A DNA stretch of 64,000 bases, taken from sequence record OQ790161.1; one strand, given 5' to 3'. The notes below the pieces were generated by a model, which made no database searches, was not told the DNA's origin, and saw only the letters and a list, made by a program, of their open reading frames with translations. The translations under genes and the position numbers were made by a program. Below, one piece after another: positions 2,728-28,396 of this stretch. Within the stretch, counting starts at the first letter, position 1. The number at the start of each line of letters is the position of its first letter.

Positions 2728-4232
2728 AAATCACCAAGCTCCTCCTGCTCGAAGTCGGCACCTTCAACGACCAGTTCCAGCGGCCGTTCCAGGCACACGT
2801 TGACGGGCACTCCATGCAGATGTTGCAGGAGGCGACCCACTACGGCCAGAACCTGACCCCGGCTGCGTTGGGAGCCGTCGGCTCCAACATCATGCGCATC
2901 TCCTCGGTCACCGCCGGCGGCGTGCTCATTCCCAACAGCTTCGACACTCCGCGTCTGTGTCTGATGATGGAAGTCGAGTTCCCCGGCACCGGCGGTATGG
3001 TGCAGGTGGAATGGCTGATGGGCTACACCGACCAGATCGGCATCTCGAACATGTATGGTAACAACCATATCTCGTTCGACCGCAACATGAACATCTACTT
3101 CAACAACGTCATGAAGGGCCGGCGCATGGTGAATAACCACGCCTTCGGCCGTGCCCAGACCACCAGCGTCCAGGGCACCTACCAGCTGATCAATCATGAC
3201 TACCGCCCGAGCATGAACACCCTGCATCAGGAACCGCATCTGATGCGGCCGCAGGACGTGTTCTACTCCCAGTCGATGTCTGGCGCCCGCCAGCTGCTGG
3301 GATCGGAAGAAGTGATCGACGCACGGCCCACCCATGGTCCCGAACGCGTGGCTGTCTCGCATCGTCGCAACACGGTGCCGGGTCAGTACCTGTCGGCCAT
3401 GCTGGAAACGTGGAAGAGCAACAGCGTGTACGATGAAGTCGATCCCGGTTCGATGGCCTCGCAGATGGCCGCATCGATCGCCGAGCCGACCATCTCCCGT
3501 ATCCGCTCGCTCTATGAGCTGGCCAACGTGTCCGAACTGCGGCAGGGCGGCAGCATGACCTGGGGCCAGCTGTGCAGTCTGGATGACACCGGCACGCTGG
3601 AAGACCGTACCGTCGTGGTGCTGGCACAGTCCGATCGTCACCGGGCCAGCCTGTCCCAGCGCGGTGCAACCGAAGGCTGGCAGGGCAATGGCAACGCAAC
3701 GGTCATCGCCAGCCAGTTCGTGCAGGCCGTGCCGGGCATGATGATGGCACTGATGCTCACCGAGCTGGACTTCTCGGTGACCAACATGACCCCGAGCGGC
3801 GAATGGGATGTGCTGTTCGAGAACGTGCAGTCCTTCACCGACGGTGCCCATCAGGTCGATCACGTGCAGGCCTTCCGCTACAAGCTCATCAACGAGCTGA
3901 TGCCGGGGCTGAGCCGTGGTGGTCTGATCCCGCTGGAAATCCACGCCAGCTTCAACGTGCTCGGCCAGACGTTCGTGCAGATCAACATCGATGGCGAAGG
4001 CTACGTGCCGTACATGGCACCGAGCTTCTGCGATGGTCTGTTCGCACCGATCCGTGCACCGGACTCCAACACGCTGGATCGCTTCGCCGACAACCTGAGC
4101 CGGATCACCGGTTCGCTGGAGCAGGACCTCAGCGCCGGTGGTTCGGGCTATGAGCCCAACGACCCCCAGTTCAGTAACAACAACAACAACTCCGCAGGGA
4201 ACAACAGCTATGAAAATTCGGGCTCTCTATAA
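2724..4232 (+). CDS. Phage-nucleus import factor PicA/Imp1-like (phiKZ gp69-like)
   Basis: 502 aa, ATGA overlap with the gp68-like gene; assignment by synteny and size only. Confidence 0.55.
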   Translation: MKITKLLLLEVGTFNDQFQRPFQAHVDGHSMQMLQEATHYGQNLTPAALGAVGSNIMRISSVTAGGVLIPNSFDTPRLCLMMEVEFPGTGGMVQVEWLMGYTDQIGISNMYGNNHISFDRNMNIYFNNVMKGRRMVNNHAFGRAQTTSVQGTYQLINHDYRPSMNTLHQEPHLMRPQDVFYSQSMSGARQLLGSEEVIDARPTHGPERVAVSHRRNTVPGQYLSAMLETWKSNSVYDEVDPGSMASQMAASIAEPTISRIRSLYELANVSELRQGGSMTWGQLCSLDDTGTLEDRTVVVLAQSDRHRASLSQRGATEGWQGNGNATVIASQFVQAVPGMMMALMLTELDFSVTNMTPSGEWDVLFENVQSFTDGAHQVDHVQAFRYKLINELMPGLSRGGLIPLEIHASFNVLGQTFVQINIDGEGYVPYMAPSFCDGLFAPIRAPDSNTLDRFADNLSRITGSLEQDLSAGGSGYEPNDPQFSNNNNNSAGNNSYENSGSL

Positions 4233-5394
4233 AGCCATCCTGGAAGCGGCGGGCGCCATCATCGATGACGACGGCCTGATCTCCATGACGCGACCGGGCG
4301 ATGAGCCCGTTCCGTTCATGGTCGACGACAAGCGCCTGGCCATGCCGACCGAGGCACTGCTGAACAAGGGTGCCTTCAACCCGGACGGCGCGCTGATCGC
4401 CTTCCATCCGATCTGTGAGAACGTGGTACTCGACACCGGCCCGGTGCTGAGCAAGTTCGAAACGGCCATGACCTACCGGCTCACCCACGTCCTGCGTCAG
4501 CTGATCATCCAGCTGACCTCGATCGCCGCCGATCCCAAGCAGCACAAGAAGCTGAAGATGCGGGCCCACGGCCTGCTGTCGGCGCTGCCGGAAGCCGATG
4601 AGAAGACGCGCGATGCGTTCATCAAGGCGATGGAGAACACCACCATCACCGGCGCCAAGAAGCTGATCACGCTGTACGTGCGCAAGGGCGGTAGCTACGG
4701 TGGTGAGAAGGTGAGCCGTCATGCTCGCTTCTACCCGCACGTGGTGGATCTGCTGGACGAAGCCAAGCGCACCCTGGTGGGCGTCACGCTGCGTAAGGCA
4801 GACGTGCCGGCGTTCCTGACGCTGATCGAGTACATCCTGCCCGAGTACCGGGATCCGGATCGCTACTCCTCCCCGTCCAACAGCCAGGTGGCCCCGACGT
4901 TCCATGCGCTGGTCAAGACCTACCACAAGGTGGCCTCCCAGCTCAACAAGATCGTCAACATCCACGCCGACCATCTGCAGGACGCCGAGTCCCTGCTGAT
5001 CAACACCGAATGGTTCGAGGACGTGCAGGACCTGTCCAAGTACCGTGAGCTGATCCCGGTGCTGCCGGGCAACGACGGTGTCGGTGGTACCAAGGCCGTC
5101 AAGGCACCGGCCGCAGCGCCGGTGGTGGGTCAGCCGGCTGCCAAGGCTGCAGCTTCCGGTGCGGCCAGCGGTCGTTCGGTCGATGACTTCCTGCGCAACA
5201 TGATGCCGGCCCGTCCGGTGATGAACGCAGGTGGCTGGGGCGGTGGTGCGCGTGCAACCGGTTGGGCCGCAGCCTCCAATCCGGACAACGACCTGCCGCC
5301 GTGGGCACGTACCCAGGCAGCTGGCTTCACTCCGAACAACGGTGGTAACCGTGGGTTCGGCAGTCGCAGTCCGGGCGGTACCGGCGCGCTGTAA
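4210..5394 (+). CDS. Conserved core-block protein (phiKZ gp70-like), Ala/Gly/Pro-rich C-tail
   Basis: Start reassigned to ATG 4210 (MKIRALYKAIL), overlapping the end of the previous gene; strong codon bias; synteny. Confidence 0.6.
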   Translation: MKIRALYKAILEAAGAIIDDDGLISMTRPGDEPVPFMVDDKRLAMPTEALLNKGAFNPDGALIAFHPICENVVLDTGPVLSKFETAMTYRLTHVLRQLIIQLTSIAADPKQHKKLKMRAHGLLSALPEADEKTRDAFIKAMENTTITGAKKLITLYVRKGGSYGGEKVSRHARFYPHVVDLLDEAKRTLVGVTLRKADVPAFLTLIEYILPEYRDPDRYSSPSNSQVAPTFHALVKTYHKVASQLNKIVNIHADHLQDAESLLINTEWFEDVQDLSKYRELIPVLPGNDGVGGTKAVKAPAAAPVVGQPAAKAAASGAASGRSVDDFLRNMMPARPVMNAGGWGGGARATGWAAASNPDNDLPPWARTQAAGFTPNNGGNRGFGSRSPGGTGAL

Positions 5395-18771: not shown

Positions 18772-19188
18772 ATGAAGATCAATGCCTCCAACATCGCCTC
18801 CACCTTGGTGGAACTGGGCATTCCCGCCGAAGCCAGCCACCAGTATCTGGTCGTGGCGTTGGCCCGTGTCCTGGGTTACCTGCTGCCGGTTCCGGCCGCA
18901 CCGGTCGAACGTCCGGGTGACTTCTTCCAGAGCACCTACAGCGACAGCATCAACGGCGCGCTGGACGCGCTCAATGAACGCATGCCGGTCGACTACGGCG
19001 TGGTCGTGGATCTGGCCAGCAAGGTGTGGGAACTGCGCTACGGCATCGTGCATCCCTCGCTGGACCAGCAGGTCTGGGCTACCCTGGACAAGGTGCTGGA
19101 CAAGAAGTACCTGGGCATCGAGATCGACCTGTTCGATCCGGCCCTGTCGCGCCTGGGCAACGTCATCGCTGCCGGCGTGGAGCAGTAA
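18772..19188 (+). CDS. Probable virion structural protein
   Basis: AAGGA RBS; strong codon bias; within the structural operon. Confidence 0.6.
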   Translation: MKINASNIASTLVELGIPAEASHQYLVVALARVLGYLLPVPAAPVERPGDFFQSTYSDSINGALDALNERMPVDYGVVVDLASKVWELRYGIVHPSLDQQVWATLDKVLDKKYLGIEIDLFDPALSRLGNVIAAGVEQ

Positions 19189-19189
19189 G

Positions 19190-20158
19190 GTGCAGGGCGG
19201 TCAATCGACCGCCGGTGAACCAACCATCAGTCAGCTGGAGGCCACCCTCCAGCTGACTATGGCGTTCAAAGACCAGATCACTCGACAAGGCGTCATCTCT
19301 CGCGAAGAAATGCGGGTGGCCATGGAGTCGGTCGGTCTGGAGTTGCCGGCGGATATGCCCCTGAACTCCTACACCCAATTCCCCAGTACGACCAACCATG
19401 CTCGCACCTTGCACGCCATGACGGTACACATGGAGCAAGCTTTGGTCAATCTGGTCGGTAGCTTCAAGCGCACGCTCAAAGTGCACATCGAAGGCATGAT
19501 CAAAATGGTGGGTCAAGACGAACCCCACACTGATGACATGATGGCCAAGCTGAAACTGGTGGTCCCAACTATCAGCGACTTTGACTGGAGTACTGCCCGT
19601 GAGGTGGACACTCCGGAAGTCAAGGCTGAGCTGGAACACATCGACGGCTACATGGGCGCGTGGGATCATCTGGGCCAGTTGTCGGCCGAATCCCTGTTCG
19701 TCAAGGATTCGCTCTATGCGCAGATGGTGGAGCTGATGCCGGAAGTCACCCAAGTGTTGGAACGGGATCTGGTATTTGACAGCCACGAAGCGGCCCGGTA
19801 CTTCGAAGACCGACTGGGACAGCTGCACGTTGCGATCAGTACGGCCCGCCAGTGTGAACCCAGTGAACAGTGGACACCTACCCAGCTGATCAACTACGTG
19901 CTGGAGCAGACGCCCCAATTCCAAGGCGCACTGCCTTATCGCTTCCAAGTGGAGACCATCAACTTTGAGCGCATGCTCGAGAAGGTGGAGACCATGAGCG
20001 AGCAGGACGTACTGGAGAGCCAGATGCTCCGCACGGCTGAAGCACTGTGTTCGTTCATCAGCGATGGCTGGCGCTTGGAGAAGGCCCGTTACCGCACGGT
20101 GGACATCGCCTTGGGTCTTGCCAAGTCGATCTACAACCTCAAGGTACTGACGGCATAA
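19190..20158 (+). CDS. Probable head/inner-body protein (start uncertain: GTG 19190 or ATG ~19258)
   Basis: AMES cleavage motif followed by a PLNSYTQFPS..N segment typical of processed jumbo-phage head proteins. Confidence 0.55.
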   Translation: MQGGQSTAGEPTISQLEATLQLTMAFKDQITRQGVISREEMRVAMESVGLELPADMPLNSYTQFPSTTNHARTLHAMTVHMEQALVNLVGSFKRTLKVHIEGMIKMVGQDEPHTDDMMAKLKLVVPTISDFDWSTAREVDTPEVKAELEHIDGYMGAWDHLGQLSAESLFVKDSLYAQMVELMPEVTQVLERDLVFDSHEAARYFEDRLGQLHVAISTARQCEPSEQWTPTQLINYVLEQTPQFQGALPYRFQVETINFERMLEKVETMSEQDVLESQMLRTAEALCSFISDGWRLEKARYRTVDIALGLAKSIYNLKVLTA

Positions 20159-22455: not shown

Positions 22456-23751
22456 CTATGAGAGCATCGTGTCCAGATCCACCACTTGGGTCTTGAGCGA
22501 CTTACCGTGCATCAGCTTCATGAAGATGTACATCATGGTCGAACCGATGGCCGCCGCGTAGGTGCCCAGCGCCTGCGGGGTTTCAGCGATCTTGTCACCG
22601 ACGCAGAACTTGCAGAAGTTGGCACCCTCGGTACGGCAGTACGCCGGACTGCGCACGAACATCGTCTGGCCGATCTTGTCAGCCAAGTACGCTTCGGTCA
22701 GTACGCGCGAGACGCCCTTCTTGATTTCGTAGTTGCCTTCGTAGTGACGGGCGTTGTCCTTGGTGATGATCACCTCGATACCACGCTCGGTACCACAGTC
22801 TTCAAAGACCACCGTACTGTTCTGGAAGATGCGGTTGTTGAACTTCACTTCCACACCGCCCAGTGCGGTCTGTGCACCACGACCATAGGAACCGTCACGC
22901 AGCTGGTTGACCATCGCCGGCAGCTTGCTGATGTCCCAGGCTTCATCCAGCGAGGTGGGGATCAGCTCACCTGCTTCACCGAAGCCAGTACTGATGCCCT
23001 GCATGATGAAGACCTTCAGTCGGACCACGTCGTAGGACTTGTCCTTGAAGTAGAACCGTTCGCCCGGATCACCCTTCATCCACTGGCGGTCCATCTGCGT
23101 CAGCTCTTTGAGGATCTCTGCCAGCACGACCGGGTCGTGCAGCTTGTCCTTGTTGAGTGCCAGCAGTTCGTTACGGCGTTTGATCATCGCCGGATCGGCC
23201 GTCATGGTCTTGACCGTGGCCGAGGGCACGCACAGCTGAGCAAAGCCCGGCAGCTGACCGACCGCTTCGTTGAACTTGTGGTACTCCAGCGTACGGATCG
23301 GCTTGAGCTCCGGTGCCACGCCTTCTTCGGGAGCGTTGTCGTCCCAGCGGGCCACGATGTTCTTTTCGATCACCGGGATCTTGATCAGCCCGGACATGAA
23401 GTCGATCTTGTCACCGAAGGGGTAAACCAAGATCAGCTGGTTGACCAGCGCGTTGCCGTAGGTGGTGGTGATCGTGGTACGCACGTTGGGCAGATCGCCC
23501 GGACGCAAGATCAGCTTCTCCAGCGGCCGGAACAACGGCTCACCGGGCATGGCATCTTCGATGACGTTGATGCCATCGTCTTGTTCCTTGTCCATCATCG
23601 CATAGCGGCCATCATCGATGGTCGTCAGCCCGTGGGTGTACTCGTGCGGAACAGGATTGGGCCGGGTCATGGCAAAGGCTTCCAAGACCCAGCGCTTGTG
23701 GAGATACAGACCACTCTGCATCGCCAACAGGAAATAGTCACGCTTGAACAT
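22456..23751 (-). CDS. Virion RNA polymerase beta' subunit (phiKZ gp80-like)
   Basis: DCGT; Zn-site RSPAYC...NFCKFCVG; C-terminal trigger-loop-like IFMKLMHG. Confidence 0.8.
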   Translation of the reverse strand: MFKRDYFLLAMQSGLYLHKRWVLEAFAMTRPNPVPHEYTHGLTTIDDGRYAMMDKEQDDGINVIEDAMPGEPLFRPLEKLILRPGDLPNVRTTITTTYGNALVNQLILVYPFGDKIDFMSGLIKIPVIEKNIVARWDDNAPEEGVAPELKPIRTLEYHKFNEAVGQLPGFAQLCVPSATVKTMTADPAMIKRRNELLALNKDKLHDPVVLAEILKELTQMDRQWMKGDPGERFYFKDKSYDVVRLKVFIMQGISTGFGEAGELIPTSLDEAWDISKLPAMVNQLRDGSYGRGAQTALGGVEVKFNNRIFQNSTVVFEDCGTERGIEVIITKDNARHYEGNYEIKKGVSRVLTEAYLADKIGQTMFVRSPAYCRTEGANFCKFCVGDKIAETPQALGTYAAAIGSTMMYIFMKLMHGKSLKTQVVDLDTMLS

Positions 23752-23760
23752 GGAGTCCCC

Positions 23761-24573
23761 TTACAGCAGTTTCTTGATGTCCGCATCCAGGGACATCAAA
23801 TCGGTGATGGACAGGTTGAAGGATTCTTTCAACCGGTTGAGCTTGAGCGGGATCTCATCGGTGGTGGCCGAAGACGCCAACGCAAAGGCGACCAGCTCAC
23901 GGCCCAGCTTGTTGAGTGGCAACTGATGCAGCGCATCCAGATGCGGTTGGAAGGTCAGCTCGAAGGACAGACCCAACCGCTGGTTGGCATCCATCGCCTT
24001 GATGAACAGGCTGTCATCATCGAACTGCGCTTTACCCAGCAGGGCGCGCAGACGCATCTGAGCAGAGGCCACAGCCACCGAATCCGGTTGCGGTTCCGGC
24101 CGGTCTTCGCTGGTCATCTCATCGATGCGGGCAATCAGATCCGGGGAGACACGCTCCAAGGCGTTCATGTAATCGCCGATGGTCAGATCACCCACGATGA
24201 CCAAGATGTCAGCCAGCGCCGCTTCCTCGCCTTCCAGTGCAGCGGTCAGGCCGTTGATCGATACCGGGTCGTCCCAGTCTTCGATCAGCAAGATGCCCTT
24301 GAAGATCGAGTTGGCCGTACGCAGGTCCACACCTTCTGCGGTGTAGACGCCGAACTGCTTCAGTCCGGTCAGCAGCTGGGGCAGGATCGCTTCGATGACA
24401 CCTTCCAGTGCCGAATCCGAATCCAGCCCTTCCCCGATCGCCATGGCCTGTTGGATCTGGTATTCGTGCATGTCCAGACCAGCACTGCTCAAGGTCTTAC
24501 ACGCATCGAGAATCAAGTCACTCAGCTCCGGTGTGGTCACAGAGTCGAGGTACTCTCGCAATTGTTCCAACAT
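23761..24573 (-). CDS. Conserved acidic protein upstream of vRNAP beta' (phiKZ gp79-like)
   Basis: 270 aa, co-oriented with the vRNAP gene; synteny inference only. Confidence 0.5.
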   Translation of the reverse strand: MLEQLREYLDSVTTPELSDLILDACKTLSSAGLDMHEYQIQQAMAIGEGLDSDSALEGVIEAILPQLLTGLKQFGVYTAEGVDLRTANSIFKGILLIEDWDDPVSINGLTAALEGEEAALADILVIVGDLTIGDYMNALERVSPDLIARIDEMTSEDRPEPQPDSVAVASAQMRLRALLGKAQFDDDSLFIKAMDANQRLGLSFELTFQPHLDALHQLPLNKLGRELVAFALASSATTDEIPLKLNRLKESFNLSITDLMSLDADIKKLL

Positions 24574-24669: not shown

Positions 24670-25116
24670 ATGGGCAAGAGTAACAAACGCAGCCAAGGGC
24701 AGAGCACGCCGGTATGGGACGTCCTTCTGGGTCTGTCTCAAGCCGTCGGCCAACTGACCAACATCCCCGCCACGCTGATTCCGTACCTGCGTGATCAGGA
24801 AGTGGTCCAGAAGATCAGTGACCAACCGCGCTTCAGTCGACTCGCCGTTACGCTGGAACAGGACATCCGTGCCCTGACCCAACGCTTCCGCGACATTCAA
24901 GTCCAACACATCCATCGCAAGGGTGCGGCCATCGGCGGTGACGCCTTGATGCAGTCGATCAACCTGCACGAGATGTATGTGGCGTGGGCGGCCGATTTCG
25001 ACGACATCATCATGCCCACCTATGCGGACATGGTGACGATGATCGCCAACACCGGTGCCAATATCGATACCACGTTGCCCTCGGCAACGGGCATCACCCA
25101 GCAGCATTCACCCTGA
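24670..25116 (+). CDS. Hypothetical protein
   Basis: 148 aa helical ORF after an AT-rich divergent intergenic region. Confidence 0.65.
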   Translation: MGKSNKRSQGQSTPVWDVLLGLSQAVGQLTNIPATLIPYLRDQEVVQKISDQPRFSRLAVTLEQDIRALTQRFRDIQVQHIHRKGAAIGGDALMQSINLHEMYVAWAADFDDIIMPTYADMVTMIANTGANIDTTLPSATGITQQHSP

Positions 25117-25132: not shown

Positions 25133-26862
25133 ATGAGCAACGAACAGACCCCGCCGCAGGAAGATACTGCGGTTGGCATGGAGGTCGATAGCGACTTCGC
25201 GCAGCCGGAAAGCCTTACCCCTCCGGTTGACGAAGCAGCTATCGTCCCCGCTACCTCCCCGACCCCCGAAGCGGTCCCCAACGAAAACGTCGACACCGAC
25301 GTCGGCCTGCCGGCCGATGATGAAGGTGGACTGGCCGTCGATCCGCCGGCAACCGCCGAAGAACTGGCCACTGCCGAGAACGTGGAACTGCTGGCCGTCT
25401 TCCTGCGTCAAGGCGTGAACCTCAACGCCGAACTGATCAAGGGCATGGATCCGTCCCGCCCGCTGGACCCGCGTCGTGCGTGGCGCGAAGGCGAGTCGCT
25501 CTTCATCGTGCCGGCCACGGCCGAAGAGTTCAACAACCTGGTCATCAACACCCGTCGTCTGGACCCGACCCAATCTGAATCCGGCGCCCGTTGGCGTTCG
25601 GCAGTGGGCCTGGGCCGTGAACTGATGCCGCGCGCCGATACCGGCCTGGCTGCTCTGATGCGTCAGGACTCGCTGTGGCGCCAGAAGGTGCAGGTCGATG
25701 GCGAAGGCAGTACCGAGATCGCTGCAGGCCGTCCCTCGGCCGGCGAGCGCCGTGGTGATGCACCGCTGGTTGGTGAGGAAGCACTGCAGCACATGCAGAC
25801 CATCCTGGGCACCGGCCAGATCGTGCGTATCCCGCTGTGGCATTCGGGCATCTGGGTGAACTTCAAGGCACCCACCGAAGCGCAGCTGCTGGAACTGGAT
25901 CGTCGCATCGCCAACGAGAAGATCGACCTGGGCCGTGCAACGCAGGGCCTGGCGTATTCGAACATGTCGGTGTACCACAACGCCTACCTGTTCAACTTCG
26001 CCCTGTCGATGATCTTCGACTGTTCGATCTCCGGCTACACGATCGACCGCCTGAAGGAAAAGATCCTGCTCACCGACCTGCCGCTGTTGCTGTGGGGCCT
26101 GCTGTGCACGATCTACCCCAACGGCTATCGCTACCACCGTCCGTGCGTCGTCGATCCCTCGGCCTGCCAGCACGTCGTCGAAGCCCTGCTGGACATCTCC
26201 AAGCTGTGCTGGACCGACAACAAGGCACTGGACAACTCCCAGCGCAACCACATGGTGCGCAAGGCGACCAAGTTCACCGACATCGAACTGACCAACTACC
26301 TGGCCAAGCACCGTTACAACGGCATGGGCAACCTGCTGGTCAAGGAAGTCAACGGCAACAAGACCTACGTCGAACTGCGCGTGCCGACCCTGGCCGATTA
26401 CGAGCAGTCCGGCTATTCGTGGGTCGAAGGCATCGTGGCGTCCACCGATCAGGCCTTCGGTTCGCAGTTGGCCGGTGATGACCGCAACGAGTACATCCTC
26501 GACCAGGCACGTGCCACGGCCCTGCGCCAGTACGCGCACTGGATCAAGCGCATCAACACCGAAAGTGCCGACGGCACCCAGCGCTACATCGAAGATCGCA
26601 ACACGATCGAGCAGCTGATCAGTCAGCTGACCGGCGATCAGGAAGTGCTGACCAACTTCATGAACGGCGTGCAGAAGTACATCAACGAGGCGACGATCTC
26701 CCAGATCGCCATCCCGTCGTACAAGTGCCCGGCCTGCCAGAAGGACCAGCAGACGGATGAGGAAGCCAAGCATCCGCACCTGATCCCCCTCGACACCGGT
26801 ACGATTTTTTTACCCTTCTCGGCCAGCGCACCAGCCTGTTGCTGGGTTCGGCGCCCCTGTAA
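25133..26862 (+). CDS. Baseplate-hub/tail assembly chaperone-like protein (T4 gp26/gp51-like); true C-terminus lies in the -1 frame after the T7 run at 26805-26811
   Basis: ATG 25133; acidic N-tail; PCVVDPSAC and CPAC Cys pairs. The -1 frame gives TLLGQRTSLLLGSAPL* ending 26862, just before the next RBS, while frame 0 runs into non-protein-like sequence overlapping the next gene. Confidence 0.55.
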
Positions 26863-26888
26863 TCGACGCCTCCGACGAGGAGGGGCAC

Positions 26889-27335
26889 GTGTTGCTCCCC
26901 TCGTTCGGACAAACCAAAGCTCGAGACCTCGAGCCGGTACGTCGGTTGATGGAGGCGATGAAGGAATCGGACAAGAAGAAGCTCAACAGTATCGAAACGC
27001 AGCTGTTGCTGCGTGAGCTCTACGATGACACCTTCCGCATCGCCTACCACAACGATCCGCATAATCCGCTGTCGCTGGTAAGTAAGCATGCCAAGGAAAC
27101 GTTGGGGCCGTACTCGCGGCTGTATCGCACTTACTTCCGCTTTGCGTCACTGGGAGTGGGTGAGATGTTCAAGATCTCGGTCCAAGACTTTCTGAACCAG
27201 CCACGGGAGATGGTCGAGATGATGTTCACCATCGCCGAGAACAAGGCGACGGTTAAGAGCAACGAGGACAAGCGTGTGCTCGATAAGATCGAGAACTCCA
27301 TGCGCGATCAAGTCCAAGGTCTGGTAGGCCGCTGA
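26889..27335 (+). CDS. Downstream chaperone partner (T-like segment)
   Basis: GTG start with GAGGAGG RBS; frame is open back to 26784, across the T run; ISVQDFLNQPREMVEMM resembles the C-terminal motif of tail chaperone T segments. Confidence 0.55.
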   Translation: MLLPSFGQTKARDLEPVRRLMEAMKESDKKKLNSIETQLLLRELYDDTFRIAYHNDPHNPLSLVSKHAKETLGPYSRLYRTYFRFASLGVGEMFKISVQDFLNQPREMVEMMFTIAENKATVKSNEDKRVLDKIENSMRDQVQGLVGR

Positions 27336-27348
27336 CAAAGGAGACCGG

Positions 27349-27807
27349 ATGGTCATCTACGAAGGAGCAGGCAACGTGTTTGCCTGCCACATGCAAACGA
27401 TCGTGTGTAGCATCAACACGGTTGGGGCCATGGGTAAGGGGATTGCCCTGTCGTTCAAGAACTACGTTCCTGGACTGTACGAGTACTACCGTGAGCGCTA
27501 TCGGGATAAGGAACCTGACTTCCCGAGCGTGAACCGTCTTGAGGTGTACACGGTGGATGAGCAGCGCAAGGTGCTGCTGTTTCCCACCAAGGATCATTTC
27601 AAGTACCCCTCCAAGTTGTGGATGATCGAACAGAACCTGCGTCAGCTGGCTCAGCGGTACGAAGAGCTCGGCATCACCTCGATAGGCATGCCCTTGATTG
27701 GCTGCGGTGTCAACACCGGACAGCTCAATTGGGAAAAGCAAGTGCGCCCATTAGTCTACGACTACTTGGATCCCTTGCCGCTGCCTGTTAAGATTCTCAC
27801 CGGTTAA
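27349..27807 (+). CDS. Macrodomain protein (DarG/Appr-1-p processing-like ADP-ribose hydrolase)
   Basis: TIVCSINTVGAMGKGIALSFK, LLFPTKDH and SIGMPLIGCG..GQLNW. Confidence 0.85.
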   Translation: MVIYEGAGNVFACHMQTIVCSINTVGAMGKGIALSFKNYVPGLYEYYRERYRDKEPDFPSVNRLEVYTVDEQRKVLLFPTKDHFKYPSKLWMIEQNLRQLAQRYEELGITSIGMPLIGCGVNTGQLNWEKQVRPLVYDYLDPLPLPVKILTG

Positions 27808-27970: not shown

Positions 27971-28396
27971 ATGAACTACAATCTCAACGCTGTCCTCGAA
28001 GCAAACCTGCGCCAGTTGACCGCTAACACGGTGCGCATTGAAGCTGACAATCAAAATCTGCAGGCGTCCCTGTATTCGCAGGAAGACGTCTTGGAGTTCT
28101 TCCGCGAGACCTACGAAGACAAGTCGTTGGCTGAACGCATGGAGATGGTCCACGACTTGCAGCGTCAGGTGGAGTCGATGGAAAACCTCGTCGATCTGCT
28201 TGCCGAATGCAAGTATAAGTTCGAGAAAGAAATCCCGACCATCCTCACCAACGTGCACGTGCGTCCGCAGTTGGCCAACGACTACGTGCAGGCCACGCGT
28301 CTGTACGCTGAGAACGTTGACGCACTGGTCAACACGATGGCTGCGCATACCCGCGTCCACCGTTCGCTCCAGAACATGCTGTCGGGTCCGATGTAA
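27971..28396 (+). CDS. Hypothetical coiled-coil protein
   Basis: AAGGAG RBS; helical heptad pattern. Confidence 0.7.
   Translation: MNYNLNAVLEANLRQLTANTVRIEADNQNLQASLYSQEDVLEFFRETYEDKSLAERMEMVHDLQRQVESMENLVDLLAECKYKFEKEIPTILTNVHVRPQLANDYVQATRLYAENVDALVNTMAAHTRVHRSLQNMLSGPM

Follow-up and report, generated by a model that had tools for sequence, protein, structure and literature searches.

A probable programmed −1 ribosomal frameshift, conserved near the 3′ end of phiKZ gp77-like genes, and an extra frameshift in the deposited sequence of Xanthomonas phage RTH11

The gp77-like gene of phage RTH11 and its surroundings

The window, that is, the whole stretch of DNA analysed, comprises bases 1–64000 of Xanthomonas phage RTH11 (OQ790161.1), a jumbo phage with a genome of 312 kb. 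The GC content of these 64 kb is 58%, and they contain a single homopolymer of at least seven bases, a T-run lying in a gene homologous to that specifying gp77 of phage phiKZ (Table 1). The body of this gene matched phrog_4585 with a PHROG E-value of 3e-110, the same family being matched by all 35 relatives of the gene body, and a tblastn search with it retrieved 198 phage records, PHIKZ077 among them. The order of the gp80-, gp79-, gp78- and gp77-like genes was found to be kept in LucasX, Xoo-sp14, phiKZ, PhiPA3 and metagenome contigs, while the macro-domain gene was seen in the same place in members of the RTH11 clade (loci L006, L008–L010 and L079–L081). Judging from the full-length profile match and the synteny, the RTH11 gene is a member of the phiKZ gp77 family (phrog_4585).

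Table 1. Features of the RTH11 window at and around the gp77-like gene
Feature	Position	Strand	Remarks
Virion RNA polymerase beta-subunit homologue, phiKZ gp80-like	22456–23751	−	GenBank annotation; conserved order
gp79-like gene	23761–24573	−	GenBank annotation; conserved order; synteny anchor
phiKZ gp78 homologue	24670–25116	+	Conserved gene order; synteny anchor
gp77-like gene (phiKZ gp77 homologue, phrog_4585)	25133–26862	+	~575 codons; broken by one frameshift in the deposit
GenBank CDS WJJ54901.1	25133–27016	+	Hypothetical protein of 627 residues with an unrelated run-on tail of ~70 residues
Spacer from the stop of the short product to the next ORF	26863–26888	+	26 nt
Extension ORF	26889–27335	+	148 codons; frame open upstream to 26784
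GenBank CDS after the gp77-like gene	26958–27335		Start falls inside conserved extension sequence
Macro-domain protein	27349–27807	+	Pfam Macro, E = 8.3e-08; directly after the extension ORF

The 63 relatives of the gp77-like protein found in databases are 484–671 residues long, and in nearly all of them the distance from the last CxxC motif to the C-terminus is 36–46 residues. Disorder is predicted for the first ~80 residues of the RTH11 protein and its relatives, a segment of variable length. Four cysteines, arranged in two pairs, do not vary among 35 relatives and hint at a zinc site. The gp78-like neighbour gave a Pfam match to RVT_3 (RNase H-like) with an E-value of 0.003, below threshold. 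Further upstream, an ORF of 458 codons (18782–20158) overlaps two annotated CDS. A second split gene at 18772–20158 was considered and rejected; a PHROG match was obtained for the annotated CDS at 18772–19188 only, and the 5′ part of the 458-codon ORF can for that reason be taken as open merely by chance, the genome being GC-rich.

The initial annotation of this DNA had drawn attention to a T-run at 26805–26811 containing a heptamer of the X XXY YYZ type, and to the peculiar behaviour of the three frames that cross it. The run and its heptamer are present in the window as claimed. The main frame, said to continue into unrelated sequence as far as 27016, indeed specifies ~70 residues past the run that lack any match; the second frame comes to a stop at 26862, and the short tail it encodes matches the family profile; no stop interrupts the third frame between 26784 and 27335, where the next ORF ends. 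When a profile built from the 63 relatives was used, the main piece of the RTH11 gene aligned with positions 1–516 and the short tail in the other frame with positions 519–533, while neither the main-frame run-on nor the third-frame bridge gave a match to it. Since both the main piece and the other-frame tail are recognised by the profile, a single frameshift splits the deposited gene, which is otherwise free of stops, insertions and deletions. Unlike the RTH11 deposit, all 73 relatives compared below read the gene in a single frame.

Three metagenome contigs that include the 3′ portion of the gene (L079–L081) allowed a closer comparison. Their DNA identity to the window is 96–97% around the gene (for L079, ~92% over its whole 5.5 kb). 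Each showed exactly one one-base indel relative to the window in the 1.3–2.2 kb compared around the gene, and in each of them this 3′ portion lies in one frame. Over all 5.5 kb, L079 differed from the window by five other indels; four lie between genes, and the fifth falls at a neighbouring CDS. This last is a one-base gap at the CDS located at 27971–28396, a gene called at 141 residues in both sequences, and probably reflects an alignment ambiguity near the gene end. The extra frameshift in the RTH11 deposit is most likely a homopolymer-length miscall, a real variant of the isolate being less probable. A one-base homopolymer discrepancy hiding a programmed −1 frameshift had been one of the two options offered by the initial annotation, and the single frame found in the 73 relatives and in the three contigs supports it. 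As a consequence of the extra frameshift, all three readings are shifted in the RTH11 deposit, neither of the two conserved ones continuing the frame of the body, and the homopolymer-length discrepancy makes the bounds of the two GenBank CDS (25133–27016 and 26958–27335) probably wrong.

The T-run and the overlapping frame among relatives

Of the 73 relatives analysed, 66 are IMG/VR loci and 7 come from isolates or metagenomes. Their GC contents are 25–60% and their identities go down to 21%; clustering at 60% identity grouped them into 35 lineages. In every one of the 73, the gene ended 8–20 codons past a conserved pair of phenylalanine residues (F-F), and a T-run of 5–9 bases was found at this pair. 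The −1 frame reached from the T-run was open for 150–201 codons and closed precisely at the stop codon of the next ORF, also in all 73. As a control, the +1 frame was inspected in the same relatives; it was open for 1–102 codons, with a median of ~10. The next ORF lay in the −1 frame in 35 of 35 lineages, and the bridge was still open in genomes of 25–40% GC, for which stops in the −1 frame amount to 0.12–0.19 per codon. An alignment of homologous loci had been proposed earlier as a check, on the grounds that homologues devoid of the T-run and with stops in the bridging frame would speak against the site. The opposite was seen: all 73 loci contain both the T-run and the open overlap frame.

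The same arrangement is present in PhiPA3, Eowyn, FLC9 and Bacillus phage AgentSmith. In the last of these (200 kb, 37% GC; locus L083, ~2860–3370), the site was examined by hand; the residues are V-F-L and not F-F, and the heptamer is T TTT TTA. Its presence in a Bacillus phage means that the site reaches beyond the phages of Gram-negative hosts.

The nucleotides of the site are constrained beyond what the encoded residues call for. The first F codon was TTT in 34 of the 35 lineages (summed log10 P = −21.9), TTC being predominant elsewhere in the same genes, and the codon that precedes F-F ended in T in 31 of 35, as compared with 9.2 expected (summed log10 P = −19.4). No such constraint was seen at the second F codon (TTT in 21 lineages, TTC in 14). 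Over the 73 loci, the heptamers T TTT TTT (39 cases) and T TTT TTC (25 cases) together accounted for 64, and a G was found at the X position in 8. Once the relatives are compared, the sequence pattern of the site is far beyond chance, and the choice of codons against the genome bias is the signature of an X XXY YYZ heptamer and not that of a run of maximal length.

A search for stimulatory elements gave little. No consistent downstream RNA structure was found, the median z for the family being −0.2, with values below −2 in 6 of 35 lineages; the z value at the RTH11 site was −0.01, and a hairpin 6–7 nt downstream of the site was present in a few lineages only. No Shine-Dalgarno-like stimulator was seen by eye upstream of the T-run in RTH11 or LucasX. 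No strong stimulator is known at the site of lambda G/GT.

The apparent spacer and the start of the extension ORF were analysed on the basis of alignment columns. No ATG, GTG or TTG codon was present between the upstream stop and the conserved sequence of the extension in 27 of the 35 lineages; a start codon lacking a Shine-Dalgarno sequence was found in six, and one preceded by a 4-nt Shine-Dalgarno sequence in two. At the column of the GTG of RTH11, four of the 35 lineages have a start codon, the others having V or I codons that are not starts. The 26-nt length of the spacer is the same in RTH11 and in at least 10 relatives of its clade (L002, L006, L008–L010, L079–L081, L011 and L012). In the frame of the extension the spacer encodes conserved residues, with a codon periodicity reflected in entropies of 0.79, 0.40 and 1.00 bits for the three codon positions, and a motif ending in G-H-[V/I], just upstream of the GTG column, recurs even in phiKZ and Xoo-sp14. 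In the RTH11 clade the GTG coincides with a conserved V/I column; in RTH11 itself it is preceded by a Shine-Dalgarno-like sequence, GAGGAGG, so independent initiation is possible in this phage. Taken over the lineages, the extension ORF would usually not be an independent gene.

The extension family is large (253 clusters at 50% identity). Its AF2 model (pLDDT 86) is all-helical and has a long C-terminal helix; searches with the extension against Pfam, PDB sequences and PDB folds gave no match. Natural in-frame fusions of body and extension were absent among the 150 relatives listed of the 253, all of which are of 191 residues or fewer. Several small annotated ORFs correspond to 3′ fragments of the open −1 frame, namely phiKZ 076.4 (locus L004, 4476–4718) and those at 4512–4871 in Xoo-sp14 (L003), 3135–3368 in AgentSmith (L083) and 2997–3323 in Eowyn (L084); the open −1 frame that holds them spans 150–200 codons.

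Proposed recoding and alternative explanations

The architecture of the site, its conservation and the constraint acting on its nucleotides were established by comparing the relatives. The shared architecture and the codon choice against the genome bias indicate a family-wide programmed −1 frameshift, as yet unannotated, that would give rise to a short and a long isoform. According to this proposal, normal decoding past the T-run would lead to a stop 8–20 codons further on, rendering a short isoform of ~575 residues. A fraction of the ribosomes would slip one base back on the T TTT TTY heptamer and would then translate the apparent spacer together with the next ORF, producing a long isoform composed of the body plus an extra helical domain of ~150 residues. 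We infer that ribosomes do perform this slip and that both isoforms are made. The probability that the gp77-like gene has a conserved programmed −1 ribosomal frameshift near its 3′ end, with an extra frameshift in the RTH11 deposit, is estimated at roughly 0.75.

A joined CDS covering both ORFs was annotated in none of the eight public records examined. The site was not found described in the literature on RTH11, on frameshifting in phiKZ, jumbo phages and Chimalliviridae, on gp77 and PHIKZ077, on 201phi2-1 gp136 or on T4 hub proteins, and neither a proteomic nor a ribosome-profiling or other published record of either predicted product was found there. The 'gp77' and 'gp136' met with in this literature follow the numbering of other phages.

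The same architecture could be explained by a shift occurring at transcription, with RNA polymerase stuttering on the T-run so that a minority of the mRNAs encode the fusion; the stuttering enzyme would be either the host RNA polymerase or the multisubunit ones of the phage. The runs of 8–9 T present in many lineages, including the RTH11 clade, would fit this idea, as would the failure to find an RNA stimulator at the site and the fact that these phages use RNA polymerases of their own, a subunit gene being located next door. However, the run is only 6–7 bases long in the 14 lineages with TTC as second F codon, and only 5 T are present in four loci. The positions under constraint are X, XXY and YY, and not those that would make the run as long as possible, which favours a ribosomal slip over transcriptional slippage. 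A transcriptional origin of the fusion was thus considered unlikely.

The second option offered by the initial annotation was that the run length in the deposit is genuine. In that case the conserved short product of RTH11 would itself depend on slippage, and the fusion would call for a shift of another kind. It is true that the deposited run is a canonical heptamer in the frame of the body, that a −1 slip on it would reach the conserved short tail, and that RTH11 has been isolated and propagated. Nevertheless, this would be the sole such case in more than 76 sequences, among them three contigs of 92–97% identity; the bulk product would carry ~70 unconserved terminal residues, and the long isoform would require a rarer kind of shift. 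Given that all relatives read the gene in one frame, a genuine run of this length is disfavoured and seems quite improbable.

It is extremely improbable that the locus simply holds two ordinary adjacent genes, with a T-run that merely encodes F-F, a bridge open by chance and an error in the deposit, since the GTG before the next ORF in the RTH11 clade, the Shine-Dalgarno-like sequence in RTH11 and the existence of long chance ORFs in GC-rich genomes (such as that at 18782–20158) would have to be weighed against a next ORF in the −1 frame in 35 of 35 lineages, a bridge open even at 25–40% GC, the lack of a start codon in 27 of 35 lineages, the retention of TTT and the preceding T against codon bias, and the conserved residues located upstream of the supposed start.

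If translation proceeds by a programmed −1 ribosomal frameshift as proposed, every phiKZ-like jumbo phage would make an unannotated long isoform of a conserved protein. The products annotated as phiKZ 076.4, Xoo-sp14_233, Eowyn gp105 and AgentSmith_12 would then be fragments of the extension, and another recoding site with wide conservation would be added to those already known.

Possible function and comparison with known systems

The initial annotation had interpreted the site as part of a tail-chaperone system of the G/GT type. The elements of this interpretation that concern the layout of the frames were supported, namely the slippery T-run, a predicted short zero-frame product and a predicted −1 fusion; the identity with lambda G/GT or P2 E/E′ was not. 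A short G-like first ORF had been envisaged, but the gene starts at 25133 and its product, at ~575 residues, is about four times too large for that. No Pfam family of tail chaperones was matched at E-values up to 1, whether by the 35 body relatives or by the 59 extension relatives used as queries. The gene context also departs from that of the lambda and P2 chaperones: the gp77-like gene is flanked by homologues of virion RNA polymerase and head proteins and by the macro-domain gene, and is not located between tube and tape-measure genes.

Searches with the body and extension proteins of the window itself gave nothing in Pfam, and sequence searches of the PDB with both gave nothing meaningful; with Foldseek, the best E-values against the PDB were 0.87 for the AF2 model of an intact relative (P0002; pLDDT 79.8, pTM 0.78) and 3.1 for that of the extension. 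The P0002 model was also compared with BFVD. Besides its own family, it matched proteins named T4-like baseplate hub assembly protein, subunit or chaperone, with E-values of 1e-4 to 3e-2, probabilities of at least 0.97 and TM-scores of 0.45–0.54 by target; phage G Gp181 appeared as a weak fold match (E = 0.12, TM 0.51 by target). At the profile level, Pfam T4_baseplate (PF12322) was hit by 3 of 35 relatives, the best scoring 18.2 bits as against a cut-off of 24.5, and phrog_150 ('baseplate hub') was weakly matched by 3 of 35 (best E = 5.5e-05). A role of the gp77-like protein in tail or baseplate-hub assembly is a weak lead, to be taken as such and not as a result, since the fold and profile links are themselves weak. 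It is conceivable, although the idea is tentative, that the recoded pair acts as the chaperone system for tail or baseplate-hub assembly in phiKZ-like jumbo phages (the nucleus-forming ones and their relatives), that is, a functional analogue of G/GT based on a T4-type hub-assembly protein, in which the slip would set the ratio of short to long product. If translated as proposed, the gp77-like pair would be a candidate, open to experiment, for the assembly-chaperone function that is missing from phiKZ-like phages; if this reading is true, the principle of the frameshifted chaperone would extend to a lineage for which it had no prior description.

Two sets of phage proteins are of relevance to this possibility. 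Pairs equivalent to lambda G/GT occur in other long-tailed phages. In Bacillus phage G, gp181 and gp182 are cited as a pair of this type, Gp181 being described as a frameshifted tail chaperonin (PMC8570332). In phage T4, gp26 and gp51 are among the hub assembly chaperones (PMC3004832). The likeness of the gp77-like proteins to T4-type hub assembly proteins consists of the weak fold and profile matches; these extend over a portion of the protein only, the T4-type proteins being half its size, and all the Pfam matches are below the gathering score. To our knowledge, no frameshift is known in the T4 hub genes.

As regards the mode of decoding, the proposed pair resembles lambda G/GT in having overlapping frames, the second of which would be fused to the first by a −1 slip close to the end of the latter, in that the second frame usually lacks a start of its own, and in that the short form presumably makes up most of the product. 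It differs in that the first protein is of ~140 residues in lambda and of ~575 in the gp77-like gene, and in that the first ORF of lambda, of ~100–150 codons, is placed between the tail tube and tape-measure genes. The P2 E/E′ slip reportedly also takes place on a run of T (Christie and co-workers, 2002). Shared with it would be the −1 slip, the T-rich heptamer, the location in a myovirus morphogenesis gene and a second product extended at its C-terminus, whereas size, sequence family and genomic context are different. Gene 10A/10B of phage T7 and E. coli dnaX (tau/gamma) also specify two isoforms by means of a −1 slip near the 3′ end. The proteins are unrelated to those considered here, and in dnaX the slip yields the shorter product, but they resemble the predicted gp77-like isoforms in having a common body and different C-termini.
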